Of a stretch of DNA of 64,000 nt, positions 2,334 to 38,888 are shown piece after piece. The position numbers and the translations under genes were made by a program. The notes beneath the pieces are model-generated. The model had not been told where the DNA came from. It saw only the letters and a program-made list of their open reading frames with translations, and ran no database searches. Positions within the stretch are counted from its first letter, which is position 1, and each line of letters begins with the position of its first letter. This stretch comes from Trichosphaerium sp. ATCC 40318. Lineage: Eukaryota > Protista > Tubulinea. The DNA is taken from the NCBI GenBank assembly GCA_038496445.1, contig JALMLS010000577.1, positions 682,001 to 746,000 on the forward strand, in the 5' to 3' direction.

Positions 2334-5149
2334 GTTCACGTACGTTCGCCCTAGGGGCTACACGATAACTGGAGAAATCCCCTTTTTTCTGGTCAAAAAC
2401 ATGTACACAAGTGATAATTAAATAAATATGTTGACACGCGACTATAGTCAATATAGTTCACCAGAAAATATAAAGGTCTTCAAACAAGCTGAAGTACGTT
2501 TAAAATAACACAAAGCATAGTAATTGTTTAGTTATGTAAAGGAGTACTATAGATGCATGGAAGAAGGATGACCATTTTTAGAAGTGCTCTTGACTAAACT
2601 CGGTTATTTCTTTAGCAACGAAGGCCATATTTCCAAAAAAGATTTCTCCAGGCGTAGGAGTAGTTGTAAGGTCATTTCAAGGTAGATAGATAAATAAATT
2701 TGCTTACCTTAAAGCTAGAGTACACAAAAACGTAAAGCACGTGTATGAAGCACCATAGTTAACAAAGTAGTACTTTTTGGTAGGTGCCATAGTATTTACC
2801 TATTTTATGCCAATGAACCAACGTTAAATAAATAAGGTGGAGACTTTTATTGTACTTCTGTCCATTAACGGCACGAAGCAGAGTAAATGATCTTTTTTTT
2901 TTTATTTTCAAACTTTTATTTGCTTGGTACAATGTTTATCGTGTATGCTAGGCCTTACAGAAGTAATTGGTAATCTCTGGTAACTACAGATATACACAGG
3001 TATGTATTATATACCGCGTATGGATAGTGTAGTTGACACTACGTTCAAGAAAGAGATAAAATCCTGTCTTTTATGATAAAATTGCTTAGCAAGTTTTTTA
3101 CTTTGTTTTGTTTGACGTATGTTTTATTGGTTTTCTGACTTCTACAAGCGCATCCAACAACCAGAGGTTAGTTCTCTTCCTGTACTTCACACAGATAGTG
3201 TCACCGCGGCTGAATTATGTAGCATACAAATTAGGCACGTCACGTGTTGTTATGTTGTCTCTGACTACTCCTGGTGTCTAAACAGCTCAAACAAATTGGC
3301 TACAGTAGCAAGTTAGTGCTAATTCTGCCTGGCGAATTTTGTGGCGTAGGGGATACATCATGTGTTGATCAACATCGATTATTTTCTCCAAGTACTTTGC
3401 TTTTGGTTTTCTTTTTTTTGAAGAAAGTGCGCGGTTTTAGTAGACATGATCACGGTTAGTGGTATTAAGAGCGTTATCACGTCATGAGATTCCCTCCTAT
3501 CGGTTGTACGTGTTTATTTCGCCAAAAGAAAAAAAAAGGTCCGAAATTCGGGATTTCTTTTTTGTAGTTTTTACTCTTTTTGTTCTCTGTAGTCTAGAGG
3601 TATACCCCAAAGCCTCTATCATAAACATGATCTACTGCTAACATTTAAAAGAAGGCTACGATGGCGTATTGATGAACAAATTGCTTTATGGAGTGTTGGA
3701 TACCACCAACACAACGCCAGCTGCCAAAGGGGAGCTATATCAAGAAAAAAAACTAGGTAGGTTCACACGAAACAATCATGGCCAGCTACAGCTTGAATGA
3801 ATGCTAAGGATATTATACAGTGTACTAGCGCATACAAGATCTCACCAGATATTCTTGTTCGATGACATAAATGCCATTTTGTCGCCACTGATTTTTTATT
3901 TAATAGGCAACAACGCACGTGTCATATCTCAAAGGAGTCCAATTTCAAGAAAAAGAGATATAACGGTTTAAATAATAAACTGAAGAATCATATCTTTGCA
4001 TTACTATAATCACGAGAACTCTGTAACTTTTTATTACACAACATTGCCGTTTGAACCAAAGGGATCCGCGAGAGTGATAAATTTTTGATATCATAAGGTA
4101 CATTAAATGGCTTTCTGCGTCTTTCGCACTTTCTGAAAATAAAAAATAGCTAATGAAACTTGTAGTCGCTTTTCTTTTAGGCTGACAGATATGCCATGTG
4201 TACCTGTTAGTTATTTCCGAGGCATCAAAGTTCGTCTGGAAAAATTCAAAAAAAAAAGTAAGCGAAGATTACGCGTGATTTTACTATGTGCAGACGCCGT
4301 TGTTACGTTGGTAGGCATATTGGGAGGGGTTCCTTGTACGTTTTCACCCCAAATAATAACTTAGCGTGCAGTATGAGAAGTTGTTTGATAATAAATATTT
4401 TTCACGTTGGTAATCACGTGCGTTAACGTTTTATTTATATTGAGTGGTTCAACTACCAAATAGTGCCAACAACAAAGAAGTGTTTACTTTATGGTTCACA
4501 CCCAACTGTTTAATGAACTGACTCAAAACGTACGTGCAGTTTGGATAAATAATACCCGACCAATGTCTTGCCTTGATTGAGAAGGAACTAAACAGGTCAT
4601 CAAAGTTATGAAGCGTGTTCCAAAAATCCGGAAAATAAAATAAACCGTACACCGCAAAAAAAAAAAAAAAAAAGGATTTAGTAAAGAAAGGAACAACGGT
4701 CCTTTTTTGAACCAGAAGTCTATATATTGTCTGTACCCTTTCAATTTAATGTATGAAGGTTTCTAGAAAGGAACTACACGAGTTACCAAAGGCCTACTGG
4801 GAACAGCAGTCAGACTTCGCTTTCCAACGCTATATTTGACATGCACGTCTGTATTCAACTAGTTTTGAAGCGAATGAGGCGCGTGGAGATAGAATTGGAA
4901 ACACATTCGGAGCTCACCCTCTTTTCTGACGATATGATATTTCGCATTTCATGTGTTGGAAAGAAGTATTGTGTAGAGAAAACCGGTTTTTTTGGTTCCT
5001 CGTAGTAATGCTTAGAGACCTATCTTCTATTTGTCTGTAGAGCATGTATCAGCTTCCCCTTAAGAGCGAAGGTTTAGTGTGATTTGGCTCACATACCGCG
5101 GACGGTATTATTTAAGTGAACCATTAGTATATTAGTTATTATTTTCAGG

Positions 5150-5974
5150 ACAGACTCTCACAATGTAAGCACCTCTTCCTCTTTGTTTGGTTGTATAACA
5201 TTGCTGTAGGGAGCAAAGACAATATACTTTTCATTCGACGCAGATAGGAGAGAAAGGGGTGACAAGAACAACTGCAGAAGAAAATCTAATATGGAGCGCA
5301 GTAAGTGTTCCTTTTTAAAAATACTAGAACAGTATTTGTTTGTTTTCTCATTGTTTTTGAAGGCTTACTGGAGATTATTTTCACTTTTATACTGTGATAT
5401 CCATAGCTATTGGTTCGGGAGGAACAGCAAACCTATACTAAAGGCTTTGGCTCTTGCTACAGTTATTGGCATAGGTGTACGACAAATTGACGATTTCTTG
5501 TACATTGTCGAGTACGGTCGTTATTTATCACGTGATTCGAATACCTTACAAATACGTAACAAACGTTTAGGCATCATAATTTATTCATGCTCGCCTTGAG
5601 CGTATTCACAACAGAGAAGCCGAAGAAGGCTAGGAGTGTTTATTCCGTCTACAAAGCCCTGAAGAGGTGGGTACCCCAAAGTTTTTTTTTATTCGGGTAA
5701 ATCTTTCTAAAACTAAACTCACATGAGGTGGGCTTCTGTTGGAGACAGGCGACGTGTTAAATGTAATTGGAAGTTTCAAATACACGAGGACGAGAGGCAA
5801 TTGTGGAGAGAGAGTGTAGCTGAAGCGCAACATTTCGTATCCACAATGCCTTCAGTAACTTGGATATGGAGCCATTACGACGAAGGTCACCCAGAGAAAA
5901 AGGAAACTATCCCTTTATTCTCTTACAATTTTATTCTACTTCTTGAATCCATTGTATACGCCACACACTTATGA
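5150..5974 (+). CDS. Multi-exon hypothetical protein (3' exons; 5' end probably near 4100-4800, unresolved)
   Basis: Spliceable exons (AYWRLFSLLYCDIHSYWFG..., WASVGDRRRVKCNWKFQIHEDERQLW...) ending at TGA 5974, followed by AATAAA. No family recognised. Confidence 0.4.
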
Positions 5975-7216
5975 AAGTAAACTAAATAAAACGTGTACTT
6001 TACTAAAAAATTGTTTTACACCCGTTTCATTGAAGTACCTTGCAGCAAATGACAGCAATGTTTTCTCGGTATTTATTGTACATTGAGGTTCAAAAAAAAA
6101 AAGTATTATTTTGTAGTTAGCTAGCACTCACTACCTAGTAAGGTAGCCTGGTCGACATTATTTACGAAGGCGCTTCACAATCGTGCTGAAACGACTTTTT
6201 TCCAAAAGAATTTTTTTCTTACTTTCAGTTCATTTAAACCACGTTTATCAGGTAATTTAGCGTACTAAAGACCATATTAGATGATTATATAGCTAGCTGA
6301 TAAATTTTGTAATGGTGTGAACAGCTTTTCAAGTTTTTCCTTGGTTTTTTTGAATGGCTTGAAAAACTGTCGGCGGCTAAATATACCTGGAACCGAGGTT
6401 TTCACGTTTTATTGTGAACCACCAACGTTGTTACTACATAGCAAATAGGACCAGAAATAAAGCAGCGTAGCTCCAGCATCAAACATGTTCCACCAGGATA
6501 TCTCGGTAACTCGAGGATTGTTAACTAAAATGTATGTTATTTCGTTTATAAACTGCAATGGTCCCACTGTTACCTTTGCCATTTGGCATACCGCTTCGCA
6601 ACGAGAAAGCCTGGAAAGTGTTAGGTTTTGAAACCATAGAAGCATACCAGAGACGTACCATAGCGAGCACCTATGTATACATGGTACCTCTAAAGCATAT
6701 TTATCAACTAAGTCCGCAGTTACAGTCTATGTTAAAGCGCTGTATTTATGACACCTGTCTCTTCTTTCCACTAAGCTTTATACCTATAGAAACGTTTGGA
6801 TCATAATGAGAGGAAAAGAATCAGATGTGTTTCTATTGGGAATAGTCGAGCCTCACAACAAGGACAACGATAAGTATCCTGCCTATTGGTTAATAAGACC
6901 AACCAATCGCATGTTTCAAACAATCAAAACTGATTACGTACTAGATAGCATATGGTACCGTATCATCTTGGCGCGTGTAGGAGTTAAATAAAGCACGACG
7001 CCCCAGGGAAAACGGGGTTAAAAAAAAATACACAGGAAAAAAAGGTAAAAGCCTTGTGATTTTTTTTTTGGCTTTCGCAGCTATTGATACATACGAACAT
7101 ACTTGAGAACTTTCATATAGAATCCCCGCTAACTCAAATTCCACGCCAGATCATTAGAATACTATACATAATATCTGTATCAAAGAGATTAAAACCTTTT
7201 TTTTTTTTGAAGAAAT

Positions 7217-8386
7217 TTATTTTGAAACTTTTATCAAAGACACTCTTACATTAACAATACACCGTATCTCTACATCCCATAGGGAACCATTTGTATTCCA
7301 ATAAACAGATTTACCTCTTTTCTTACCACTGAAATAGTTACACTGTTCAACAAGTACTCCGTTTGTATGATACCTCTCATACAAGCCATCGAGAAGACCG
7401 TTAGCATACGAACAATAAATAGCCATAATACCATTCTCATGCCACGTTTGATACGACCCATGTCTCTTACCATTAGAGTACTCACACTGCATCTTCTGTA
7501 CAGGTGTTCCTGATTGGTACGTTGATTTTGTGTACCACAATTTATGGCATCCTGTACGTATCCCATTTTTATAGAAGCAGTGTTCTTTTAATCTACCACT
7601 TTGCTCCCATCTATAGTACTCACCTTCCTTCTTACCATTTATATATGTACACCACTCTTTCTTAGTACCCATAGGAAACTGTTTAAACCAAATACAATAC
7701 TCACCGTCCAATTGTCCGTTTTTATATTGACACTCAACAAACAACGACCCATCTTCATAGTACTCCGTGTAAAACCCGTTTTTAATTCCGTTTTTATAAA
7801 CACATGACTTTTTTAAACTACCTGGTTCAATATAAGAAGGTACAACTAGTCCTTTTCTCCTCAAATGACGAGGTGTTTTCCTACTTTTTTCGTTTTCTCG
7901 TATTTTTCCTTCATACCATCTATCACATCTTCCTTCCTTCTTTCCGTTTTTATAGTTACAAAATACCTTCATATCACCTAGAGGATACCACTCAATATGC
8001 TCTCCATCAAGAAAACCATTCAAATAATGAGATAGAAGTCGAGGATTAGCATGCCTTTCTTTTTTGTTTTTCGTGGCAAAATGATTCCATATTTTGTACT
8101 CTCCGTGTTTCTTGCCATGCACAAACATGCATTTCGCTCGTAGGAGCGGATTAGAGTATCTAAAGTCATAATAAAGAAATAAACCGTTTCTTTCAAGACT
8201 TTTATCGAATCGCGTTGTAAATGCTGTGAATTTGCTTATCAGTGGCCAGATATGGTTTAAATACGCGTCAAGACTGCAAATAATACGTTGAAGCTCCACA
8301 GGAAGAGAAATCAAAATACAATCACAAAATCGCGAATCGTAGCTCTTATTACTATTTTCAAGCGTAACTGAGTCGTTGTACGCCAT
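7217..8386 (-). CDS. Intronless MORN-variant (YwqK-like) repeat protein with F-box-like N-terminus
   Basis: 389-aa ORF with about a dozen repeats of the type YKNGKKEGxYxxWYExG; N-terminal LISLPVELQRIICSL...WPLISK. Confidence 0.85.
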   Translation of the reverse strand: MAYNDSVTLENSNKSYDSRFCDCILISLPVELQRIICSLDAYLNHIWPLISKFTAFTTRFDKSLERNGLFLYYDFRYSNPLLRAKCMFVHGKKHGEYKIWNHFATKNKKERHANPRLLSHYLNGFLDGEHIEWYPLGDMKVFCNYKNGKKEGRCDRWYEGKIRENEKSRKTPRHLRRKGLVVPSYIEPGSLKKSCVYKNGIKNGFYTEYYEDGSLFVECQYKNGQLDGEYCIWFKQFPMGTKKEWCTYINGKKEGEYYRWEQSGRLKEHCFYKNGIRTGCHKLWYTKSTYQSGTPVQKMQCEYSNGKRHGSYQTWHENGIMAIYCSYANGLLDGLYERYHTNGVLVEQCNYFSGKKRGKSVYWNTNGSLWDVEIRCIVNVRVSLIKVSK

Positions 8387-23751: not shown

Positions 23752-26052
23752 CTACAAATACAACTTATGTTTTTTGACATACGCCAATACTTTTTTGTGA
23801 AGCATTGTACTGAGCTGTTTCTCATTCTCTTCAAAAGATTGAAAAAGTGACCGAATCGAGGTTGAACTCAGCGTACGCTAAAATATCAGGTGAGTTGAAG
23901 TGACTACACTCAGTTGTACCTCATTACAATCATTGATGATAAAAACACGTTCAGATTCTTTAAAACGTGACATCTTGTGTTCATATCCATTTCGTCTGAG
24001 TGCAGCAAGTTTGTACTTTGAGTCTATAAAGTTGAGTGCAGTTGAGACTGAGTCAGCGCCAACCAATGCAACTAGTGTAACCGGTATACCTATTTTATCA
24101 AGCGGTCAAACGACGTAACAGAGTATTTCGCACATTGTTTGGAGAATATCGCTTGTATGTTATCTAGATATTGTGAATTCCTTAGCTGTGACCTATTTTT
24201 AATGTAAACTTGAAGGTGTTTGAGGAGGAAACAAACCTATCCACCATTATATCTGTGTCTTCTACGGCCTTTTGGACCATTTCATATCGATGGAAGAAAG
24301 GTATATGAGTTCCCTAAAGGTTATTATAACTTATACGGATAGAGTTTTTGATTACTTACGCTTAGTTTTCTACTGACCCATGAATCCTTTGCAAGCGACA
24401 TATAAGTCGCAATAACATTGTATCCTTCTTTAGTAAAATGATTTGAAGCGTCATGAATCACTTTAACATGATTGGTATGAACAGGACAGAACGAACCACT
24501 AACAAAAGGGTAAGATCCAAAATAAGAAAAAACGGAGAACAACCTTAACACTAGCACTAGGTTTTTGGAAGGATCAGCTTCAAACTTCTAAGAAAGGTAT
24601 TAGTTTATATATTCTATCAATAGTATGTTTATACCTTAATCTTGTTGTATGGAGTGCTTGAATAGAAGGGGTACTTTGGAAGAACCTTACCAACAATATC
24701 ACTTAAAAGTTTTGAACATATTGTATCAATCTTTTTCAAAGCAGCTTGTGTACCTAAATAGAAACTAAATCAACGACTAAGTGTTTTTTTACCACGGAAA
24801 AATACAAGTTTTTACAGCTATTGTTATCGAAAAAAACCCCACAAAGTTAATATGAGCGAAATAGTGGTGGCTTGATTCTTGTTGACAACTTTTTTCGTTT
24901 GTGGTGGAACTTACCAATGTTATTGTAAAAATACATGTTAAAGTAAGCCAAGTACATTTGATGGCGTTCTTCAAATCGGTTTGTTTTAGGTATAATCTGG
25001 TGGTATGAGTCCATAAAAGCCTTTGGAGGCGGTTTCCACAGGCTCATAAAACTGAGTTCGAATTCACTAATTTTGTAGTAAGTATCGTGTTTTTAACGGT
25101 CGTTAGTTGTACTTGTGGGCGTAACAAGCTTGTGAATCAAACAATACTATTTCTCCCTTATCAGTGACTCCCCAGTTTTCAGAATGCATATCTCCATGCG
25201 TAAGAACCGGCTTAATTGTACTTTCTATGCCTGTATTGACAAGTTATCAAAGACCGTTCGATTTTGTCTTTATGATACCTTCAAAGAACCAAGGTAAGCA
25301 ATCCAATACTTGGTCAAGCATACAGCAGATAGGGTAAGCTTCTGGGTGTAAATTTGTTTTTAACTGAGTTACGCCTGGAGCAAATCTTTGTTCCTTAAAA
25401 AATGTGATCCAGTTTTCTTCCCAACCATTCTTTGTGGTCAAATTATCGGCAACAATATTGTGTTGGAACCCAAACTTGCCATCTACCGAACATTTTAATG
25501 TTAGGAATATATATGCTAGCAAATATTTGTTTGTAACGTACTATCGGAGATTCCCTGAGAATGCAATTGAGCTAGCTTTTTACCAAATTCAACATGATTC
25601 TTTGATGTCTTTTTCACGAAGTTAAAGTACTCTATTAAAATAAAGTATCCTTGAATAGATACTAAATCTCCATGGCAGAACACCTTGGGAGTACGAAAAA
25701 TGCCCGTATCAGCAATAGAATGCAAACTATTGATTTCCAATTCAAGCGCTTGTTTTCCTGTTTTATTCCTATTTATCTATGAATTCGTGAGACTAAAGAT
25801 CTTGTGTGAAGTACGGTATACCTTCAAAAAGTAGGAATCTCCATTCTTTGTTGTAATGAAGAAGCATATATTCATTTTTGCTTTCACAGGTCTTACGTCA
25901 ATATCTAGCCCAAGGTGTTTTTGTAGTAGTATATTCTCAGAAATCTCTTTTGTTAGTTGATTGACTGTCATTGCCATTCGCTTATAAAACTGTTTCTGAG
26001 GTGTTGCTACAGCAGATTTCTTTGCTTTTGGAATAGTCGGAGCACTATCCAT
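23752..26052 (-). CDS. Fructosamine-3-kinase-like domain fused to NMNAT/NadD-type nucleotidyltransferase
   Basis: Kinase motifs: YFLK, FGKKLAQLH, FGF..N...NGWEENWITFFKEQR, LTHGDMHSENWG, FDSQACYAH, EFEL. Transferase motifs: SGSFCPVHTNH, LVGADS, LSSTSIR, VLAYVKKHKLY*. Confidence 0.85.
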
Positions 26053-26851
26053 ATCGACACCCTCGGCTATAAGCAATTGTTGCTGTAACCTTCCACGCGA
26101 AGTTGCTGTAATAATACCAGTATTAGGCTTTTGATACCTCCGCTCACTTACATTTTCTTGTCTGCAGCGACGCTCCAATAGAACGTTTGCCAGCGTAAAT
26201 AACGCGCCACCATGGTATATCTCTACTTGAAGACGGGACACCTCAACAATATGTTGTTTAAAGTTTTTCATTGAAAAATGACATTAAGAGATTAATCAGT
26301 TATTTTCAAGGGCTTTTAAGAAACGCCGTACGATTTATAAAACCTGCTGTAGCTCTTGCGCCAAGCGGTACGCCAGCTGCACTCGCTAATTGTTGGAATG
26401 TAACTACAGTCCCCTTTTTGTTGGTTAAAACGACCACTGACGCTTAAATAAACGCACTTTAGGTACTTTAAGCAGTGCTGTGGTGTATTTATTAGTTGGT
26501 TTCTCTTTCAAACGTTTCAGCCTCTTTTTAGGCGGTTCTGACATACCACGAAGTTAGATTACCTTGCTAGGCGTTGAGTTTATGAAAAGTTGACAACTTG
26601 TAACCTTGTATGGCTACCTTAACAGACAGAACTTAAAAAGCACGTATCAGTTTCTTTACTCCTTTGGTAGTTTGAGAATCCTTTATCATTCCATTTTCCG
26701 AACAGTATAAAAGTGTCAAATGATTGTACACAACTTTGCTTAACAATTCAGAGAATGTTCGCTAATCAGGGACGCCCCTGAGCTCAATACTTTGATTTAA
26801 GTGGTGGACAAGGTCTATCGAGTGGTATATTTACCTCTATTGAATACCAAC

Positions 26852-29800
26852 ATGGAAAGAGAAGTGTCAACAACGACTATTGAACCAAATTCTATAGTAC
26901 CCGATGAACTGTGCTTAAAATGTTTTCCGTAAGTAAAAACGTACCCACTACGAGGCTAAGCGTTTTTGAGCAATTTCCTGATTTTCTTTCACCTAAAATC
27001 ACCACTAGGAGACTGACGTGTATTTACGCGTTGTAGCATGTGTTTGCGTACGTTAACTTTTTCTAAATGTTAAAAACTTAAAAATCGATAGCGCCGTTGG
27101 TACCATGTCAGTCGCGATTTTGAATGGTACAATGAACATTATAGCATTCTTTTTCCTTAGGAATTGACTCGGATTTACGGTAATGTCAATTTTCGTACCT
27201 TCTGCGATGGCATTGTCGTCAAGGAGAATATAATCGCTATGGGTACAATTAGGTGTCAACACGGCTCACACATTGTTATTTTATACGTTATGGGCTAAAA
27301 TAAAGATGGTACCACAATATGAACGTGTATGTACAATGTCGTTTTAAACGACGTTTATCGCTCGGAAAACGCTTAAAACGTTGGTTTGCTGTGTTAATAT
27401 TGTAGTCAGAGTTCCCCAATACCGATGTAGGGCAAGCGTGTACAAGCGTTTAAATGGTGTACATACATTTAATAGCTATTTGACATATGTTAATAAGGGT
27501 TTCAAGTCTGTACAGCCTTGGGTAATCTGTAAATTCCAATATTCCGTACTCCATTTACCCTAAGCAGTTTTACATTTTATGAAATACCATGAGTTATTGA
27601 AGGTCCTGTACTCTTTGAAAGTATAGTCCATACACTGTATATGATACAGCATAAATTTCAGCAATAGTTAAACAATTGTAGCAGCTATAGTTTCAAAGAA
27701 ACTGTTTTTGGTAAGTACTGAAGTATCTCCATGTAAAAAGTAAGTTCTGTCTCTAAAACTTCTGTAGTGGTAAAACATAACTACAGCAAGCTGTATGGAC
27801 CTCTGATTCAATAAAATACAAAGCAAGAGTGAGTATTTTGACATTTTCATTTAAATATTATGTTCATCAACTTCTATGAAAAAGTAACCTCCGTGTTTTG
27901 ATACCTAAATTATCAAATACTCTATAACTGCTAATAGGTAGACAATGGTTTATTGAGCACCTGCCGCCAAAAGGAAAGATTTGAAAAAGGTATCTGTGGG
28001 TTAGAATGATTGTTCAAAACAATGACCAATTTACAGCAATCAGGTATAGAGACGGGTGATGATAGCTTTATGTGGAACACTAAAAGTGATAAAAAATGCA
28101 AGAAACGACAGAATGTAATCCTTAATCACTATTGTGTTCAAGAATTACCTGCAAAACATGGTGGTGTTAGAGGAGAAGAATATGATCCCAGGCAGAAAAA
28201 ACTCGTTTTTGGATTCAATGAAATAGTTGATTGAAGTACACTATTAATTACCAGCAAGTTCTGGTGCAACCAAATTGTAGACACAAATGTGCTCTGAAGC
28301 ATACCCAAAATTTGGCCAAAAATAACGTTTTTGAGGTGTGCTAGACTTTTTTTGAAAGTGTGAACTGCTTACAAAAATCGTCCCTAGGAGGTTCCTGACG
28401 TGTATTTACGCGTTGTAGCATGTGTTTGCGTACGTTAACTTTATTCTAAATGTTAAAAACTTAAAAATCGATAGCGCCGTTGGTGTCAGTCGCGATTTTG
28501 AATGGTACAATGAACATTATAGCATTCTTTTTCCTTAGGAATTGACTCGGATTTACGGTAATGTCAATTTTCGTACCTTCTGCGATGGCATTGTCGTCAA
28601 GGACGCAATATAATCGCTATGGGTACAATTAGGTGTCAACACGGCTCACACATTGTTATTTTAATCTACAGTATTAATAGTGAACCACAACTTGCTAAGA
28701 TTGAGATTCGTCGTACATTATTGCCGCAATCTGGGTCAATTCGTTTTACGTTTTATTGATAACCAAATACCGTAGGATAGTTCTGATTACTGAAAACTTA
28801 GCTATTTATCTTGAGCAGTACTCAACAGAACGCTTGGCAGAAATTTTGACAACTAAAAACCCTTTTATTTTGGAAGGTAAACTCGAGAGACGTAACCTAA
28901 ATTACAAAATCAGAAATGACAAAGGGACACTAGTTAAAATAAAGCAGTATAGCAGCCTGTACAGAGTAGTTGGTGTAATGTGTGAACACCCAAACGTTCC
29001 AAGGCATTCTTTTAAACTGACTAAGGATGGAAAACTAGCCATTGTTTTTCATATTAACAGAAAGCAGTACGTGCTGCTGCAAGAAATCGTCCTTTTCTTT
29101 TCTTATTTTCCAAGTCAATTCATAGCACGTGCCGTTTTCTTACACTGAAAGTACATTCTTGTATCATTTTTCATTTGAACAAAGATCTTTTATTGTATAA
29201 AAAAGCCAATTTTCACGTGTATGAACTACCTTATTGCTAAGAGTTTATGTTTCACTTAGGTTGGAAACGATGATTTGTAACGGAGAATCAATACCGCTTT
29301 TACTTCATGAGTATTGTTTAACTGATTTGCAATATCTCTGTTGCCTTAAATTCGCATCGGTACAGCAAGATTTTAATGATATTTATTGTAACATGATTGA
29401 GCAAAGGTTGTTGATCTTAAATCTACTTATTGGTCAAAGACTCTCAGTCACCTAAGAAACAAACTCAGGAGTGACTACTATACACCTACGGTACATTTGT
29501 ATGACTACTATTAACTATATTTAACTGTGATTAGTCTGTTTCTTGTACATTAAAGCAGCCAGCTGCATTGAAAGTGAATATTCATGAGCACGACATCTCT
29601 TGGATGACATACATTGAAGATAACTTACACAGAGGTGAAGACAGCGCTTATTTTTTAGAAACAACTCTGGTCTCTTTATTAATTTTGCCTTGATGTAGCG
29701 TTTCAATACTCCACCCTAGCTTATTGGCCTAAGATTCAGTTGAATGCTTTCTATGACTTAGAAAGAAAACAGTTTGTTTCTGAAATACCCCAAGAAAAGA

Positions 29801-31178
29801 TATTTAAAGTCTCTTTTGATGGTGCACGATCAATCACAAACTTGTTCTAACAGATCCTTGTTTTAGGTGGTGTTATTGAAGCTGAAGATATTCTTGAAAA
29901 AAGAATCAAAGGTATTCAGCGCTATTCTTTCCAAGCCCCTAACGTTGGTCTTTTGTAGTACTGGCTTTGGTACTAGCCAAACCTGCACTTATAAGTGAAA
30001 ATACTGGCTGCAAGCTAAACAATGAACAGTTAGAGCCTCTTTGGAGAACTAAAGCAACTCTCATAGTAACGTGCAGTCGCGTATCAAGTTGCTGGTGCAA
30101 CGCGCTGAGTAGTAATATAAAGGATGGTTATGCATTAAAGATTGTACTTGTAACAACAGCAAAACAGTACAATAGTTACAAACAACAAGATATTTTAGAA
30201 GCAGGTAAGAATGTCTGGTGTTGTTGTTTCTCACTTTATAATAGATGTTGTTATTGTTTCATATCCTTTTTTGTGTAACCCTAGTTACATACATGTTGGC
30301 ATGAAAAGTGTTGCAAATTGTATTGCAACTAAGAAACCGTTTGTAAGAAAGAGAGCCAAGATGCTCACTAATCATCAGCGTTCAATTAGACCAAGAAAAC
30401 TAAGTGAAATGAGAAAGGTACTGATTAAATTTAAAGTCTAAGAAAAACGAAATTACTAATTATCACGTGATTTTAAAGGAAGCAAATAAATACAAGGATG
30501 GAGGAGCTACCTTCCCTTTTGTACTGAATAATTTTTACTGGCATCGTATCATCCTTGATGAAGTAAATCAAGTCTTTGATAAAAAGGAACATTTTTATGT
30601 TGAAGAATTATCTTCATTCGAAGGAAGATCTAGGTGGGTTGTAAATACAACGCCTTTTCCAAACTGGTACAATACATCTTACTTTTTCTTATTGATCTTG
30701 ATGTTCACAGTTCTTTTTTATCCTTCTTAACTTTACTGAAGCCTTGATCTTGATATCAAGATTTTCTTTTGTTTGGATATAGTTTCTTAAGTTAGGCGTG
30801 ACCGTCACTGTACTTACTCTTTATTTTTAGGTTTACAATAAGAAATATAATGAAGTTCCTAAGGCTAAGATCTAGTGACCCACAATTTGAAAAAAACACA
30901 TTAGAATACACTAAGTACGTCTTTTTTATTCTTTACTTTTCGAGATTATTTATTAACTTATTTGTAGCTCGGTCATTGCTGATATACTTTTCTCCAATCT
31001 TTATTGGTAAGAAATAAGCAGTTTTCTTTCAAATTGTATTTACTAAGTGTTTGTAGGAGGTGTAGCACAACAACTAAAGAAGAAATTTGAAAATGTTTAT
31101 CATTTAAAAAAGTGCAAGATCAATAATAAACCAAAACTCTTTTCACTGTCACGTGTCAAAAGTGTTTTAGAACTATAA
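26852..31178 (+). pseudogene. Disrupted F-box / SNF2-like (Rad5/16-type) gene region with internal duplication
   Basis: F-box-like PDELCLKCF...ACVCRRWYHVSRDFEW; SNF2-like remnants GGVIEAEDILEKR, TKATLIVT, WHRIILDEVN, RWVVNTTPFPN; in-frame TAG at about 27158 and further stops; Walker A not recognisable. Confidence 0.6.
27005..28663 (+). repeat. Direct repeat of about 280 bp (27005-27283 and 28385-28663) flanking about 1.1 kb
   Basis: Near-identical sequence from CTGACGTGTATTTACGCG to CACATTGTTATTTTA; the second copy has small indels. Confidence 0.95.
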
Positions 31179-31304
31179 AAGAGCGTGCTGCGTTTTATGA
31201 ATTATTATTTACTTGAACCGATGTACCTGTATTGTATGCGTATCGATTACTTTAAAGGCAATGAGTAATGAACATTGTTTATTTTTAGTGTACATTAAAA
31301 GGTA

Positions 31305-32402
31305 CTACAGACAAAGAGACACAAGTGTTACAATAGAAAAAATGTACATCATACAAGTAATAGGTTTCAACTTTGTTGATAGAGACCTTATTGTTGTTGT
31401 TGGTTGAGGTGTTGGTGTTGAATTAGTTGGAGATAGTGCGATACTTGAAGTTGGGGCTGATGTAGTAGGCGTTGCAGTTGTTGGCGCCACAGATGGCATT
31501 GGGGCTGTTGGAGGCTGTGTAGTTGGAGGAGCTGTAGGTGCTTCTGTTGTTGGAGGTGCAGTTGGAGGAAACGTTGTTGGTGGTGTAGTTGGTGATGAAG
31601 TTGTAGGAGGGAGTGTTGTTGGAGGCAATGTAGTTGGAGGTAATGTTGTTGGAGGTGGTGTTGTAGGAGGTAATGTAGTTGGAGGTAGTGTTGTAGGAGG
31701 TAATGTTGTAGGAGGTAGTGTTGGAGCTATCGTTGTAGGTGGTTGTGTGTAATTAAATACTGCAGTGGTTATTCCACTATCTACTAGTTGTCTTGGGAGA
31801 GAAAATCTACAGATATGAGGTTATAAAAAGAGCGAGGATCATTGGCACTTACGTGAGATATGTTGTATTGAAATCAACATCCCTGAGTAAGCGGTAAGTT
31901 GTTGCTGTAAGGTAAAAACCTAACAAAGGCATTTAGTAAAAAGTAACCTTAACAAGCACAAGCACAAAAAAGGCTGAGTTTAAACTGTTCTGTTTTAATG
32001 TACCAGTTACAACGGGTTGATCAAAAGTGCACTCGAATTTTACAGTAGAACCTACATTCATGGTTGTGGTTCTGTGTTCTGAGAAGGTTAATGAGTCAGA
32101 GCCAAAATTAGCGCTATAATCAGCTAATAAGGTGAACGAGTATTCTGTTGTTGCGTCTACTGTAAACGACGAAACAGTTGATGGCGGTATATTTCCGCCA
32201 AAGGAGAGTGAGCATGTTCCTGTGTCTCCGTCACCTAACTACGTTAGCTTCTTCCGCAATTAAGTGAGTAGACCACAGAGCGTTTTTTGTATTTTCGCTT
32301 GTGGATAGAGCTGATTTTGCGTGTTTTCGTGTTTAATGTTGACGTACTTATTGATAAGACTATTGTGAAAAGGGTACATAAAACTAGAAATGCTTTAATC
32401 AT
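31305..32402 (-). CDS. Mucin-like Pro/Thr-repeat surface protein, probably GPI-anchored (copy A)
   Basis: Signal peptide MIKAFLVLCTLFTIVLSI, small globular domain, (T/L)PPTT repeats, hydrophobic C-terminus MMYIFSIVTLVSLCL*. Confidence 0.85.
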
Positions 32403-33090
32403 GGTGATAGTCTTTAGAAATTAAAAACTCCGAAGGTCTAGTTTCCGAAAATTTCGCACTATTGCCAGAAAACACAAATCTATTTCTGAAATTGTATCCA
32501 ATATCTAAAGGGAGGTTTGATAGTGTGGTTTGAGGCAAGCTCAGAGCTAGTGCGTTGTTGTTTTTTTTGTAACTTGAAAAGTAATTGTACACGATTTTCG
32601 GCTGCAGCCAAAAAACAACCTCGGTCTTTTGTTTTTTTCGCCGCTAACACAAATTAAAGAAAAAACATGGTACAACACATGGTTGTAAAGTGTTACGTGA
32701 ATGATATTAACCAACCGGCAAAATATGGTCATCAACCAATTCGTGACACAAAAAATGCAAGTTGAGAATAGTATTGGAAGTAAAAGGCACAAAACAAAAT
32801 AAATATTGTATTTTCGCTTGTTCATAGGTATCTGACTGCTAATTTTTTTGTGGTATTCACTGAAAAGATTTCACACTTGACACTTCTTTAGGAAGCAGCG
32901 AATTCTTGAAGAATGGTTATGCGTATTCGATTGAGTATGAACAAGAACTATGACCAATCAGTGACATTTCAGGTGCCATCAAGCACCTCTAACCTCAAAC
33001 ATTAGGTTGTAAAAGGACATCCAAAACGTGTTTGAGAAATAATGCTCACAAAACAAGCGTAAAGTCAGTAGTAGAAGTGCTGTGTATTAC

Positions 33091-34082
33091 TCAGATTCCA
33101 TGCGACAAGACCATTTCAGATGCTAAGTGAACAAAGGCTTCGTTAACTAAATTAAGGTTAAGGTACTAAGGTGACGAGACAAACAAGTTTTTTACCATTT
33201 TTAGAATCTTTAGATGATATTTCAAAGTATGTAAGAGCAAATTCTTCAGCAAAATCCTAAAGATAGTTAGAAAATAACCTAGTGTCAGTAGCACTAATGC
33301 CTTTGCAACTTCATAGTCTACGATACGCTCACTGCTGAGGTCGCTTTTGGATCCAACAAGTATTTTCTGAACATCGTCACTTGCATACCTGTCACAGAGC
33401 TGAAGATACCTTATGATGTGGTCATAACTTTCTTTGTTAGTAACATCATACACAACAATGATACCATGAGCTCCTCTATATGTACTAGAAGAAGGGTTTT
33501 GTCTTTCTCTACCTATAGACAAAGGTTTAGTTAGGGACCAAATCTGATAATAATATCAAACCAAATAATTATAAACCCACGTTGACATACGGTAACTTTG
33601 ATATATTTGTAACTTCACTCTTTTTCCATTGATATTTACAGTTTTAGTAATCTATATGTAAAAAACTCACGTGATAAGAATATAAAACAAGGCTCAACAA
33701 AAAGTGTGAATACTCTGTTTTTCTTTGACACGAAAACCAAAAAGTGGAAAACAAAAGTTGAACTTACAAAGTCTTTTGTTTCCTGAATGTGCGTTTCGGA
33801 AAAAGTATCATCAACAAATCTTTGCGCCATATTACTCTTTCCTACGTCATTATCTCCTAGCATAACGATTTTGAATAAATAATCACTAACAATGGAGTCA
33901 GGAAAGTATTAAACAACAAATTCTACTGTACTATGCGGTTTTAGACTCTCTGGTTGCCGTTGAAGGCTTTGGAACGCCTATCTCATGTATTAGCTTTCAA
34001 ACATTGTCATTCAAGAGTAAGCAGAGCAATATCCTTTCTCAATACCTTTTTGTGGTTTTTTTGTGCTGCTCTTACTACCCAT
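33091..34082 (-). CDS. Atypical Rab1/Rab8-like small GTPase (N-myristoylation motif, no DxxG, no C-terminal Cys)
   Basis: Spliced: MGSKSSTKK..YDYLFKIVMLGDNDVGKS..KRVKLQIYQSYRRERQNPSSSTYRGAHGIIVVYDVT..LVGSKSDL..FEISSK..EMVLSHGI*. Confidence 0.85.
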
Positions 34083-34283
34083 ATGGAGTTTTGTTGCTTG
34101 TTTGCTCTTTCAAAGAAAACGTAACTACTTATTGGGTTTAGTTGGTTACAAATGTAACCTACCACGTGTACTCCATCTGTGAGTATGGTGCATGCTTTAA
34201 TTGGTTGCAAGAGTAACGTGAGAAGGTAAGCAAGACATTCTCTCTTTTACAATTGATTTATTTGTGTGCGTGTGTAGAATATT

Positions 34284-35961
34284 TTACAGAGTAACAGACT
34301 TTATAACACCAATCATAGATACAGTCTACAAAAATCAATTTAACTCTAAGTTTCAATAATTTAATGCCGTACTGTTACTCCTTCACGAATAATGATAGTA
34401 CCTAGCTTCGATATATTGCAGTAAGCAGTACAGAAAAGTGGCTTTGAAGGTGTAAATCTTACAAGAGCAACATCACCTTTCAAAAGATACTTTGGGTTTT
34501 TAGCAGCACGTTTTTTGGGGTGACTGATTTCTAAAATTTCATCCATCCTACAACTCATAGTGGCCGTGTGAACACCTAAAATGATTACTAAAGTTAGTAA
34601 AGATCAACCTCAACTTCAAACAACGTAACTGCAGAAAGGAGAGAACCCAGCATGTATTTCATTAGGAAGATAAATAACTTTGACTTGAGCTATAAATTCT
34701 GACACATAACAGACGCTTGTGGGTTCCTCCAACGTTTGCTCTATAAGTACACAACCCCTAGAAACCCCATCGTATTCAATATCTATATGTATACCTACAG
34801 ATTCACCAGCAAAAGCCTAAACCAAAAAGAGTAAGATATTGTCAAAACACATCATAAATACAGTACCTTGTCTAAAGGTTTGTTGAACATTTCAATCATT
34901 TGTACCGTTACTTTACGTCCTGTAGGAGCCACAATAAGTGTTTGACCTACTTTAATGCTACCTCTTGCTATGTATCCAGTAACTACAGTACCAATACCAC
35001 TAATCTTATGCACTTGGTGTACCGGCATACAAAATGGCGAATTAATGTCCAATACCGCTGGAGGTAAATTATCTATAATCTCAGTTAAACAATCTCCTTT
35101 CCACCAAGAAAAACGTCTTGACGTTCTAAATACGTTTTCATCTGTTAACGGAGCAACGGGGCAAAACCTAATATTGGTACGTTTGTACCCAGCCCTAAGA
35201 GCTTCTTAGCATACATCACTTTTGTAAGCATCACAATTTCCTTTAAAAAAACATTTCGCGTACTTTTTAAGTCCACGTGACACTATTTCTACTGCTTTAT
35301 CAAATATATTTGAATCAGGATTTGAACGAATAAAATTGATTGCAATGATAATGAACTTAAGACCTTGTGCATAGGCTATTGATGCAAGTTTGGTTAAAAC
35401 CTCAGGATTTGGATAATTAGCCGAGATTACAACCAAACCAATATTAGCTTGTGTGTATCCAATAATAGCATTCTTAATACAAGCCACACTCCCTGGAGTA
35501 TCTATCAAGGTAACCTAGTAAATGATAAACAAGAGGTCAAAAGAAAAGCCAAAAAAACTCACATGTCTGTTTTGTATTTCGAAATGTGTTGTGAATGTAG
35601 TTCTTCTCATAGGGACTTCTCTTTCACATAACGGATATGGATTTACAAAACTTGCATAACTGAAAGAACGTCTATCTACTAAACCTTGTCTAATACGTTC
35701 ATGACTAGCTTTACGCCTTCGAAAAAAGAAAAAAGTAAGAAAACATATTTGTTTGCAGAAAAAAACAACTCTCCAACTATGGACACGTAACACGTAGTCG
35801 CTTGCAAGGATTGTATACAATAATGATGGATATAATTCGTACTCTTCTGACATATCACCACAATTGTAGTATAAACTTCCTGCAAGGGTAGATTTACCAG
35901 TCTCTGTTGGACCAAAAACTGCAATGCTTAAGTTTGGTTTCGATCTTCTATTGTAGTCCAT
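34284..35961 (-). CDS. Divergent eEF1A-like translational GTPase paralogue
   Basis: GPTETGKSTLAGSLYYNCG, LIDTPGS, PVHQVHKISGIGTVVTG, domain III KGDVALVRFTPSKPL; all three EF1A domains are colinear; ends IGVIKSVTL*. Confidence 0.88.
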
Positions 35962-36374
35962 TTTTGGTAATTGGAGTTGTCTAAAATACAAAGTAAGTCA
36001 GGTGTAAGGCGTGTTTGAATAAGTACAAACACTAAATGTTTTGTTCAAAAAAACAATACAGGGTGGAAAAGGACTTAAATTGTCGTGTTTCGATAAATTC
36101 CAGCGTAATCGCGTTGATTTCGAGAGTTTGAACGGGTTTTCGTTACGAACGTAATGATAAATTTAGTATAAGGCTCTTTTGACCTACAACGCAATAATAT
36201 AGCGTATTTTCATTAATTTAAGAGTATTATGTACTTTAACTGGTATTCAACACGCAAGTGTGGTATTAATGGTACGCAATTCTGTTGATTTAGCGAACAG
36301 CCAGTGTGTTTAATTAAACGAAGTGCATTTAAGGGCCCTTAAGTCATCGTAGTACTTTTGGCCCGTTATAATGT

Positions 36375-36632
36375 TGTAGTCCAATTGTTTGACCACCATT
36401 CGAATAAAGCAATCTCTTGTAAACTAAGTAACAACACTGTCTATTTCCATATCGGCGAAGAGAAAAAAGCGAGATAACCTTTAATGCCAATCTAAAAAAC
36501 ACATTCGCAGTTCAAAGAGGAACCACTACCAGCGTTTTGTAACATACAGCTATTAGCCAGACCTTGATAACATGTTGCTTAGATCCCATATCCTTTTACT
36601 CTCAGGTTGAGGTATGTTGGTTCCTGTTCATG
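36375..36632 (-). pseudogene. Deleted fragment copy of the 3' exons of the neighbouring FAD-oxidase gene
   Basis: Same-strand matches to 39205-39560, e.g. GTAACAACACTGTCTATTTCCATATCGGCGAAGAGAAAAAAGCGAGATA and GAGGTATGTT(G/A)GTTCCTGTTCAT, with internal deletions. Confidence 0.8.
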
Positions 36633-37172
36633 ACCGTCCGGTCCACTCTATGAGGTTTTCACATTTTACAACAACATCATTGGCACTCACGGCTACAGTT
36701 CTATACTAAGCCCCAAACTAGCTGTAGATACAATGCACATAATGCATACCAATTACTGCTTCGCGAAAAATACTTCCAATACTATTCTCAAGGTGTTTTT
36801 TTTGTGTCACGTTTTTGTTGAATCATATTCTACATGCTACGGGTTAATATTATTCACGTAACACTTTACAACAATCAATTATTTGTGTACTGTGTTGGTA
36901 ATATTTCGTGTCTTCCTTCTCATCTCTTAATTTTTGTTCGGGTTTCAACAGCGAAAAAGGCAAACCAAAAGATGTTTGACCTGTATGTCAGACTTTCGGT
37001 CTATAACTACCTTTCGAGCAATACAGCAACAACTATGCACGAGAGTTATCAACTTGCCTCAGACCACACTATCAGCCACAATTCAATATTTTCCAATTCA
37101 AAGAATTTGAGTTTTGTGCAAATTGTTCGGAAACTAGACCTTCGGAGTTTTTAATTTCTAAAGACCATCACC

Positions 37173-38456
37173 ATGATTAAAGCATTTCTAGTTTTATGTA
37201 CCCTTTTCACAATAGTCTTATCAATAAGTACGTCAACATTAAAGACGAAAACACGCGAAATCAGCTCTATCCACAAGCGAAAATACAAAAAACGCTCTGT
37301 GGTCTACTCACTTAATTGCGGAAGAAGCTAACGTAGTTAGGTGACGGAGACACAGGAACGTGCTCACTCTCCTTTGGCGGAAATATACCGCCATCAACTG
37401 TTTCGTCGTTTACAGTAGACGCAACAACAGAATACTCGTTCACCTTATTAGCTGATTATAGCGCTAATTTTGGCTCTGACTCATTAACCTTCTCAGAACA
37501 CAGAACCACAACCATGAATGTAGGTTCTACTGTAAAATTCGAGTGCACTTTTGATCAACCCGTTGTAACAGGTACAACTAAAAAAACCAGTTTTACGTTG
37601 GGATGTTATGGCAAAACAATATTGTTGAAAAAATCACGTGTTTGCACTACTACAACTTTCTTTTTTTTTTGCCAGGATTTTGTATACAAAATAAAGTAGT
37701 TTTAAACAGGTGGAGTTCACAGTGAACCAAACGCTGCTGAAAATTGAGAATAGCTAACAAAAAATACAATCTGGCTCATTGTGCTATTTATTACTGATTT
37801 TACACGGCTTCAAGTTCACTACATTACTATTTTTCAACATGCTATAAATCTGGCATACAAAAACTAAAGGCCTTTTTGAGCATATCTTTCTGTATTTCTA
37901 ATGCATTAGTTAGGTTTTTATCTTACATCAACAACTTACCGCTTACTCAGGGATGTTGATTTCAATACAACATATCTCACGTAAGTACCAATGATCCTCG
38001 CTCTTTTTATAACCTCATATCTGTAGATTTTCTCTCCCAAGACAACTAGTAGATAGTGGAATAACCACTGCAGTATTTAATTACACACAACCACCTACAA
38101 CGATAGCTCCAACAACATTACCTCCAACAACGCTCCCTCCTACAACTCCACCACCAACTACACCACCAACAACGTTTCCTCCAACTGCGCCACCAACAAC
38201 AGAAGCACCTACAGTTCCTCCAACTACACAGCCTCCAACAGCCCCAATGCCACCTGTGGCGCCAACAACTGCAACACCTACTACATCAGCCCCAACTTCA
38301 AGTATCACACTATCTCCAACTAATTCAACACCAACACCTCAACCAACAACAACAATAAGGTCTCTATCAACAAAGTTGAAACCTATTACTTGTATGATGT
38401 ACATTTTTTCTATTGTGTGTTTCTTTGTGTCTGTAGTATCTTTTAATGTACACTAA
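37173..38456 (+). CDS. Mucin-like Pro/Thr-repeat surface protein, probably GPI-anchored (copy B)
   Basis: Same exons as copy A, with fewer PPTT repeats, a longer second intron and a different final peptide (..SIVCFFVSVVSFNVH*). Confidence 0.85.
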
Positions 38457-38888
38457 AAATAAACAATGTTTATGATACATTGCCTTTAGCTTGTGCCGTA
38501 TACTCAAGCAAATGGTAATTAATGAATAGAAAGTAAAATACAGCAATCTCTTGTATCTTTCTAAAACTTGGTGACAAGTGACAGTAAACTCGCGCTTTCT
38601 TAAAATGATAAACACTTTCAAATTTCTTCTTTTGTACTCATGGTAAGTAATGGTTATTGTTTCGTAGAATGACAATAACCAATGCTTGAAAATCATGTGT
38701 CAAGCAAAATAGAAACACTTATTTGTTGAACTTCCCGTCTTGGTTGCTTTTGAACACCTTAGCGGCAGTTTTTATTTGTCTATCTTGCTATTTATTTATT
38801 TCGTTTAACAAATACAATCTTTCTAGTTAGCATAAAGTACAAGTACATCATGATGACAGTGAGTACTCTGAGAATGATATGATATATG

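Follow-up and report, generated by a model that had tools for sequence, protein, structure and literature searches.

This study describes a tandem pair of degenerate GTPase-like genes in a 64 000-nucleotide stretch of the genome of the marine amoeba Trichosphaerium sp. ATCC 40318 (contig JALMLS010000577.1, positions 682,001 to 746,000 of the forward strand; hereafter the window, G000:C1:682001-746000 in our numbering of an assembly of 70 Mb in 642 contigs with about 36% G+C). The two genes are co-oriented on the minus strand between positions 33091 and 35961 of the window, both are rich in introns, and the first in the direction of reading resembles the elongation factor eEF1A, followed by one that resembles Rab1. 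Our reading, to which we give a probability of roughly 55%, is that they are pseudoGTPase paralogues specific to this lineage and arranged in tandem; the Rab-like gene is perhaps decaying. Judged from their sequences, both have been kept as protein-coding genes through a long divergence, and neither retains the elements by which a GTPase works as a switch. The pair starts at position 35961, the A of the ATG of the eEF1A-like gene, and ends at position 33091, where the stop codon of the Rab-like gene has its final base. The eEF1A-like gene consists of seven exons, separated by six GT–AG introns of 47–126 nucleotides (nt), and encodes 427 amino acids, and the Rab-like gene consists of seven exons, separated by six GT–AG introns of 38–116 nt, and encodes 198 amino acids; across all 12 introns and 625 codons the window alleles contain not a single defect. 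An earlier reading of the same DNA (hereafter the original prediction) had described clean reading frames, and the frames are indeed clean after splicing into the seven exons of each gene, but not in the unspliced DNA. The four motif changes that it listed (DTPGS, NFIR, YQSYRR and SKSD) were all read at their positions in the window, and its descriptive half, in which the pair are eEF1A-type and Rab1-type paralogues with the domain architecture kept and the catalytic and switch motifs lost, is supported by Pfam and by alignments. Database searches and family scans were run exon by exon, and the joined spliced models served only, within local scripts, to check the frames and to make one pairwise alignment and the tree.

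The eEF1A-like protein has the three-domain architecture of eEF1A, with Pfam matches to GTP_EFTU in exons 1 and 3, to GTP_EFTU_D2 in exon 4 and to GTP-eEF1A_C in exon 6. Exon 1 (35843–35961) begins with the ATG at 35961 and contains the P-loop (35913–35890), with GTP_EFTU matching from positions 2 to 31, and exon 2 (35563–35716) contains the switch I region, which has been rewritten, with the SF-YA core of the Ser53 type kept. The GxxxxGKS skeleton of the G1 motif is retained, as GPTETGKS in the window and as GPIATGKS in the other haplotype. The G3 motif lies in exon 3 (35264–35514; GTP_EFTU, 29.6 bits), where DAPGH has become DTPGS (35502–35488) in both haplotypes, with the Asp and the Gly kept and the catalytic His replaced by Ser. 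When aligned to the amoeba's own eEF1A, the G4 motif NKMD of the same exon is found to be replaced by NFIR (35337–35326), with loss of the Lys and of the guanine-specifying Asp, and the G5 motif SGF is replaced by APL in exon 4 (34867–35194), a change that is absent from the original prediction. Exon 4 also contains the start of domain II (GTP_EFTU_D2, 37 bits), the remainder of which is encoded by exon 5 (34630–34816), whereas domain III is encoded by exon 6 (34373–34575; GTP-eEF1A_C, 42.9 bits) and the gene ends in exon 7 (34284–34325) with a TAA stop (34286–34284). The 126 nt of intron 1 (35717–35842) are in frame and free of stops; its retention would add 42 residues, and the retained intron accounts for an open reading frame of 158 amino acids at 35515..35991.

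The Rab-like gene begins 201 nt further on, beyond a spacer (34083–34283) that contains the sole AATAAA of the region, at 34262; the spacing of about 200 bp that had been proposed was recovered once exon 1, with its ATG at 34082, was recognized. This exon (34046–34082) encodes a Met-Gly start, a Ser at position 6 and Lys-rich residues thereafter, and exon 2 (33932–33977) encodes an N-terminal extension and ends in a split Tyr codon. The G1 motif is kept as GDNDVGKS (33857–33834) in exon 3 (33768–33885), which also contains switch I, one residue shorter than usual, and matches the Pfam families Ras and Roc. In exon 4 (33591–33651) KLQIYQSY stands in the place of KLQIWDTAG. The G3 motif WDTAGQ is replaced by YQSYRR, which spans the junction of exons 4 and 5 (33603–33591 and 33512–33508), and the RabF3 feature is missing; the stretch reads YQSYRRER-QNPSSS in the place of WDTAGQERFRTITSS, and switch II is one residue shorter and rewritten up to YRGAHG. 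The RabF2, RabF4 and RabF5 features are present as KLQIY, TYRGAHG and IIVVYDVT, respectively. Exon 5 (33295–33512; Ras, 57.6 bits) contains the degenerate switch II, YRGAHG, VVYDVT and the G4 motif, which reads SKSD (33351–33340) for NKxD, and exon 6 (33196–33256) contains the G5 motif, in which EISSK replaces ETSAK. The protein ends in exon 7 (33091–33146) with SHGI before a TGA stop (33093–33091), and no exon ending in Cys was found downstream of this stop. The Cys-less end, EISSK and the loss of a residue from each switch go beyond the changes listed in the original prediction.

Focusing on the origin of the eEF1A-like gene, its nearest relative is the multi-copy eEF1A of the amoeba itself (41% identity over exon 4). 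The identity to these copies, 37–41%, is the highest to any relative, whereas the Hbs1/eRF3-type copies of this genome reach 28–32%; these values, together with the grouping of the main copies with standard eEF1A, rule out an origin from Hbs1/eRF3 or EFL. Four of the six intron positions are common to the window gene and the eEF1A gene on contig C86, among them the phase-0 intron that precedes the final exon, and canonical eEF1A of the C86 type ends five codons later. Over 357 aligned codons the window gene and a parental copy are identical at 41% of protein and 51% of DNA positions, and the identities at the first, second and third codon positions are 0.57, 0.65 and 0.31, with the third position saturated and the second best kept. 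As read from the alignment, such a pattern is typical of sequences that have diverged while constrained to encode protein. When the parental sequence was substituted at random to an equal distance, in a neutral simulation that ignored indels, a mean of 17.6 stops arose and none of 300 runs remained free of stops. Because of the shared introns, the large divergence, the codon-position pattern and the absence of open frames from the simulation, the sequences of the pair are not those of young pseudogenes, a possibility that the original prediction had named among those that would refute it. In a tree of eEF1A-like proteins the window protein is unplaced, on a branch of 1.93 changes per site compared with 0.01–0.2 for the canonical copies, and its grouping as a clade with the eEF1A copies of the amoeba is compatible with the approximately unbiased (AU) test (p 0.23). 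Apart from the haplotig, the genome contains no other eEF1A-like copy of the window type. Near-identical canonical eEF1A genes are present at at least six loci (two places on C86, and on C388, C58, C419 and C134), some of which are probably haplotigs, and these copies are without an insertion of about 12 residues after the WFKG motif that is present in the eEF1A reference used.

The Rab-like gene can be traced to a particular branch of the Rab1-like genes of this amoeba. The top database matches of its exon 5 are ordinary Rab1/Ypt1 proteins, with 62–65% identity, and its identity to the expressed Rab1-like gene of the amoeba is 46–56%, with codon-position identities of 0.69, 0.76 and 0.40. This parent type is represented in the genome by a gene on contig C81 (G000:C81:174911-178105, exons 630–668, 817–894, 939–1058, 1262–1324, 1480–1755 and 1859–1909 of that locus), the transcript product of which, P0272 (MMETSP0405), starts with MGCGNSK, has an N-terminal extension of 39 residues, has all of its G motifs intact and has no C-terminal Cys. 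Its start is of the myristoylation plus palmitoylation type, and a similar protein, P0018, comes from another sample. An exon of the genome agrees at 100% with a transcript-derived protein of MMETSP0405 (Trichosphaerium sp. ATCC 40318), and the sequenced organism is therefore this amoeba or a very close relative. Exon 1 of the Rab-like gene agrees with that of the C81 gene in its length of 13 codons, its Met-Gly start and its split Gly codon, exon 2 agrees in the split Tyr codon before DYLFK, and the short, Cys-less end and five of the six introns are also common to both genes. Mini-exons with an ATG at 34176 or 34010 had been considered as the 5′ end of the Rab-like gene and were dropped after mapping of P0272 showed the Met-Gly exon 1 and exon 2. 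The Rab-like protein thus has the Met-Gly start, the small residue at position 6, the N-terminal extension and the exon phases of the P0272-type subfamily, and differs from P0272 in lacking DTAGQ, a normal switch II and Cys3. Since the expressed P0272 also lacks a C-terminal Cys, the missing prenylation motif is, by this comparison, an inherited trait of the subfamily and not a mark of degeneration, and by analogy with Rab5B of Plasmodium falciparum (PMC3912013) the Rab-like protein would probably reach membranes via an N-terminal acyl group, with myristoylation as the predicted modification. Two other diverged Rab1-like genes, on contigs C9 and C101, have no eEF1A-like neighbour. The C9 paralogue (G000:C9:485487-488675) reads YDICGQ, TKCD and ETSSK, the C101 paralogue (G000:C101:35158-38352) reads VQVWN...EDRF, and these partly altered motifs suggest a series of birth and decay in this Rab subfamily.

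The pair are probably best understood as fast-evolving paralogues, specific to this lineage, of the amoeba's own genes, one derived from eEF1A and the other from a putatively N-myristoylated, tail-less Rab1-like GTPase, which would have come to lie in tandem by chance between two diverging mucin-like genes. A GTPase fold with at least one G motif missing, the sequence definition of a pseudoGTPase, is found in both proteins. The eEF1A-like protein has retained domains II and III and the half that binds phosphate (P-loop and DxxG), and it presumably cannot act as a ribosome-triggered GTPase because the catalytic His, NKxD and G5 have been lost. The Rab-like protein still has its P-loop and Met-Gly start of the acylation type, as well as the greater part of the base-binding side (SKSD and SSK), and it is predicted to be unable to hydrolyse GTP, or to couple the γ-phosphate to a conformational change, because DxxGQ and a normal switch II have been lost. 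The likeliest working mode would be that of a pseudoGTPase, in which the partners of eEF1A and Rab1 are bound independently of nucleotide or in a permanently locked state, and expression may be low or condition-specific. Today the Rab-like gene seems the less constrained of the two, and it may be in the course of being lost.

The pair occupies the unique 4 kb centre of an inverted repeat, which contains these two genes only. The original prediction had placed them inside such a repeat, which was confirmed and extends further than is apparent at first sight. The left arm (approximately 31073–32782, minus strand) and the right arm (approximately 36771–38635, plus strand) are 82–97% identical and are the 5′ parts of two paralogous head-to-head genes, reading leftwards and rightwards, respectively, each with a signal-peptide-like first exon and Thr/Pro-rich, mucin-like repeats. 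An SNF2-type (helicase) exon and an exon of the FAD-linked oxidase type lie further out, and among the neighbours examined no recognizable defence domain or guard-type gene was found, which counts against the proposed defence island. The G+C content of the pair equals that of its surroundings, and this, with the introns that are common to the pair and host genes, rules out a viral or foreign origin.

The only other copy of the pair in the genome lies on C541, a contig of 16 kb with 98% identity. This contig is colinear with positions 24422–37128 of the window and stops at the repeat arm, and it is therefore the second haplotype and not a second locus at which the linkage is repeated; the repeated linkage that had been put forward as a check was thus not encountered, the pair occurring at a single locus of the genome. 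The assembly of the haplotig breaks exactly at the right arm; it carries about 4.7 kb (2949–7620) that are missing from the window haplotype at about 28726/28727, and positions 27283–28374 of the window are unmatched in it. Both haplotypes have an intact eEF1A-like gene, with five synonymous and four non-synonymous differences between them (ratio of the non-synonymous to the synonymous proportion, pN/pS, 0.23; p 0.03); five of the six differences in exon 2 are synonymous. A tract of 1208 nt that includes exons and introns (34270–35477) has no haplotype differences at all, whereas its flanks differ by 1.5–3%. It could reflect gene conversion, loss of heterozygosity or an effect of assembly, and as it is uninformative on constraint the rates in exons and in non-coding DNA were taken outside it.

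Several observations weigh against our reading of the pair as maintained pseudoGTPases. The main rival reading is that the genes were long functional, have recently been inactivated and are now silent and drifting, with window alleles that have merely not yet been disabled. We regard such an inactivation as possible but less likely than our reading, with the Rab-like gene as the better candidate for it of the two. Neither gene was found in the Trichosphaerium transcriptome (MMETSP0405/EukProt, taxid 498012), one data set from one culture condition and hence a weak negative, although a control search of identical design with the C81 Rab1-like gene recovered its MMETSP/EukProt transcript at 100%; the expression that the original prediction had asked for was thus not seen. 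No orthologue of either gene was found among 1.84 billion representative proteins. Exon 4 of the eEF1A-like gene, searched without a length limit, found no protein with at least 50% identity and none with E < 1e-30, and a word search with exon 5 of the Rab-like gene, covering lengths up to 225 amino acids, returned canonical Rab1 proteins only. Between the haplotypes, substitutions amount to 1.76% in exons and 1.46% in non-coding DNA, rates that we take as equal, both non-synonymous changes in exon 1 of the eEF1A-like gene fall at x positions of the P-loop, and the Rab-like gene has two synonymous and five non-synonymous differences. The C541 allele of the Rab-like gene also carries exon indels, of −1 at 33955 in exon 2 and of −5 at 33798–33794 and −1 at 33770 in exon 3 (net −7), and as assembled it is frame-shifted, with the first stop at codon 37. 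These indels are probably real rather than assembly noise, because in a conserved neighbouring gene the long exon is mostly spared by indels between the haplotypes, although errors of assembly could account for them. An interpretation of the two exon 3 deletions as the product of frame-restoring selection was withdrawn, as the 1-nt deletion in exon 2 leaves the allele out of frame. Inactivation is opposed by the window alleles, which are free of defects over 625 codons and 12 introns, and by the eEF1A-like gene, with its intact frame and synonymous excess in both haplotypes. The evidence for a present-day function of the pair is mixed.

Plant immunity makes use of pseudokinase or target-mimic decoys that are guarded by NLR receptors. 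The same concept, in which the target of an effector is copied without its catalytic activity, underlies the proposal of the original prediction that the pair act as decoys or sensors, in imitation of eEF1A and Rab1, in a defence island. This function is speculative and found no support in our analysis; we consider it very improbable, as we do its more specific version, in which the pair is co-regulated, is expressed only on infection and soaks up or reports those effectors of intracellular bacteria that act on eEF1A and Rab1. That both parental proteins are targets of Legionella effectors was confirmed from the literature (PMC8961657, PMC4322725): Lgt1–3 modify Ser53 of eEF1A in GKGSFKYAWV, and do so best on the GTP-loaded ternary complex, and SetA modifies a threonine of switch II of Rab1 (PMC8961657), whereas DrrA/SidM AMPylates Tyr77 of Rab1 and AnkX phosphocholinates Ser76 (PMC4322725). 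In favour of such a function, Ser53 is still present in the eEF1A-like protein, with the SF-YA core of the decapeptide that Lgt targets, and a residue equivalent to Ser76 is present in the Rab-like protein; the very long branches would fit an arms race, and expression under particular conditions only would account for the lack of transcripts in a standard transcriptome. However, the surfaces recognized by effectors would be expected to be conserved in a decoy, and here switch I and switch II, which are contacted or modified by DrrA, AnkX, LepB and SetA, are the most altered parts, which counts against this function. In the Rab-like protein Tyr77 has become Thr, the SetA threonine has become Asn, the whole DTAGQ region has been lost and switch I differs by a frame-shifted stretch between the haplotypes, whereas the GTP-loaded ternary complex preferred by Lgt is probably out of reach for an eEF1A-like protein without NKxD. 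Unlike the plant systems, no guard-type or other defence gene adjoins the pair and no paper describing such decoys in amoebae was found; the single locus, the absence of a transcript and of an orthologue and the broken Rab-like allele also speak against this function.

It is also conceivable, although only barely so, that the two genes encode one fused eEF1A–Rab protein, through a splice that joins a GTAAAA donor overlapping the stop codon of the eEF1A-like gene (34288) to the acceptor in front of exon 3 of the Rab-like gene. This donor and acceptor are in phase, but the intron would be of 402 nt, compared with 38–126 nt for all of the others, an AATAAA follows the eEF1A-like stop, and canonical eEF1A stops at the same place, five codons later. 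Exons 1 (Met-Gly) and 2 of the Rab-like gene precede exon 3 with the lengths and phases of the expressed parental gene and with introns of 68 and 46 nt, and no such fused protein is present among the 1.84 billion representatives.

Degenerate paralogues of eEF1A are not confined to this locus, and those of other protists provide a precedent for our reading. Transcript-like contigs of uncultured protists, met in the search of representative proteins, encode further paralogues of full length in which the P-loop, DxPGH or NKxD motif is broken (P0271/P0132, P0149, P0208, P0245 and P0154). In P0271 the GK of the P-loop has become GR and EPPNS replaces DAPGH, whereas the catalytic His has become Asn in P0208 and Arg in P0245. 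None of these paralogues groups with the window protein in the tree, and no Rab gene adjoins P0271 or P0149. No paper was found on pseudoGTPases derived from eEF1A or on the terms pseudoGTPase and eEF1A together, and the recurrence of such paralogues in uncultured protists appears from this survey to be without a published description. The locus as it stands is a modest curiosity, confined to one species, with no transcript found and with one allele of one gene broken. If both proteins are made, the few known pseudoGTPases would be joined by one derived from eEF1A and by one derived from a Rab, the latter with its lipid anchor at the N terminus instead of the C terminus, and the two would be natural probes for those partners of eEF1A and Rab1 that bind without a nucleotide cycle. 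Were the decoy interpretation true, amoebae would gain their first described locus of target-mimic decoys.

In conclusion, the putative pseudoGTPase pair can be placed beside several known systems. With the canonical eEF1A of the amoeba's own copies (C86, C388, C58, C419 and C134) the eEF1A-like protein shares the three domains, the P-loop skeleton and the C-terminal ending VIKSVT, whereas it differs in the His to Ser replacement, in NFIR and APL, in the rewritten switch I and in two extra introns. Ski7 is an adaptor derived from Hbs1 with impaired GTPase motifs. As in this Hbs1-type protein, the fold of a translational GTPase paralogue has been kept and the catalytic machinery lost, although the window protein derives from eEF1A and not from the Hbs1/eRF3 branch and has no N-terminal adaptor extension. 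The pG1 and pG2 domains of p190RhoGAP and AAGAB are pseudoGTPases, the nucleotide binding of which was tested biochemically (PMC5593906, PMC12490416), and which act via protein–protein contacts without a nucleotide cycle. The two window proteins resemble them in combining a GTPase fold with missing G motifs, a class assignment made here on sequence, and differ in that both still have a P-loop. Finally, Rab5B of Plasmodium falciparum is an N-myristoylated Rab without a C-terminal prenylation motif (PMC3912013), and, as in Rabs of this type, the Rab-like protein of the window has a Met-Gly start, an N-terminal extension before the DYLFK strand and no Cys tail.

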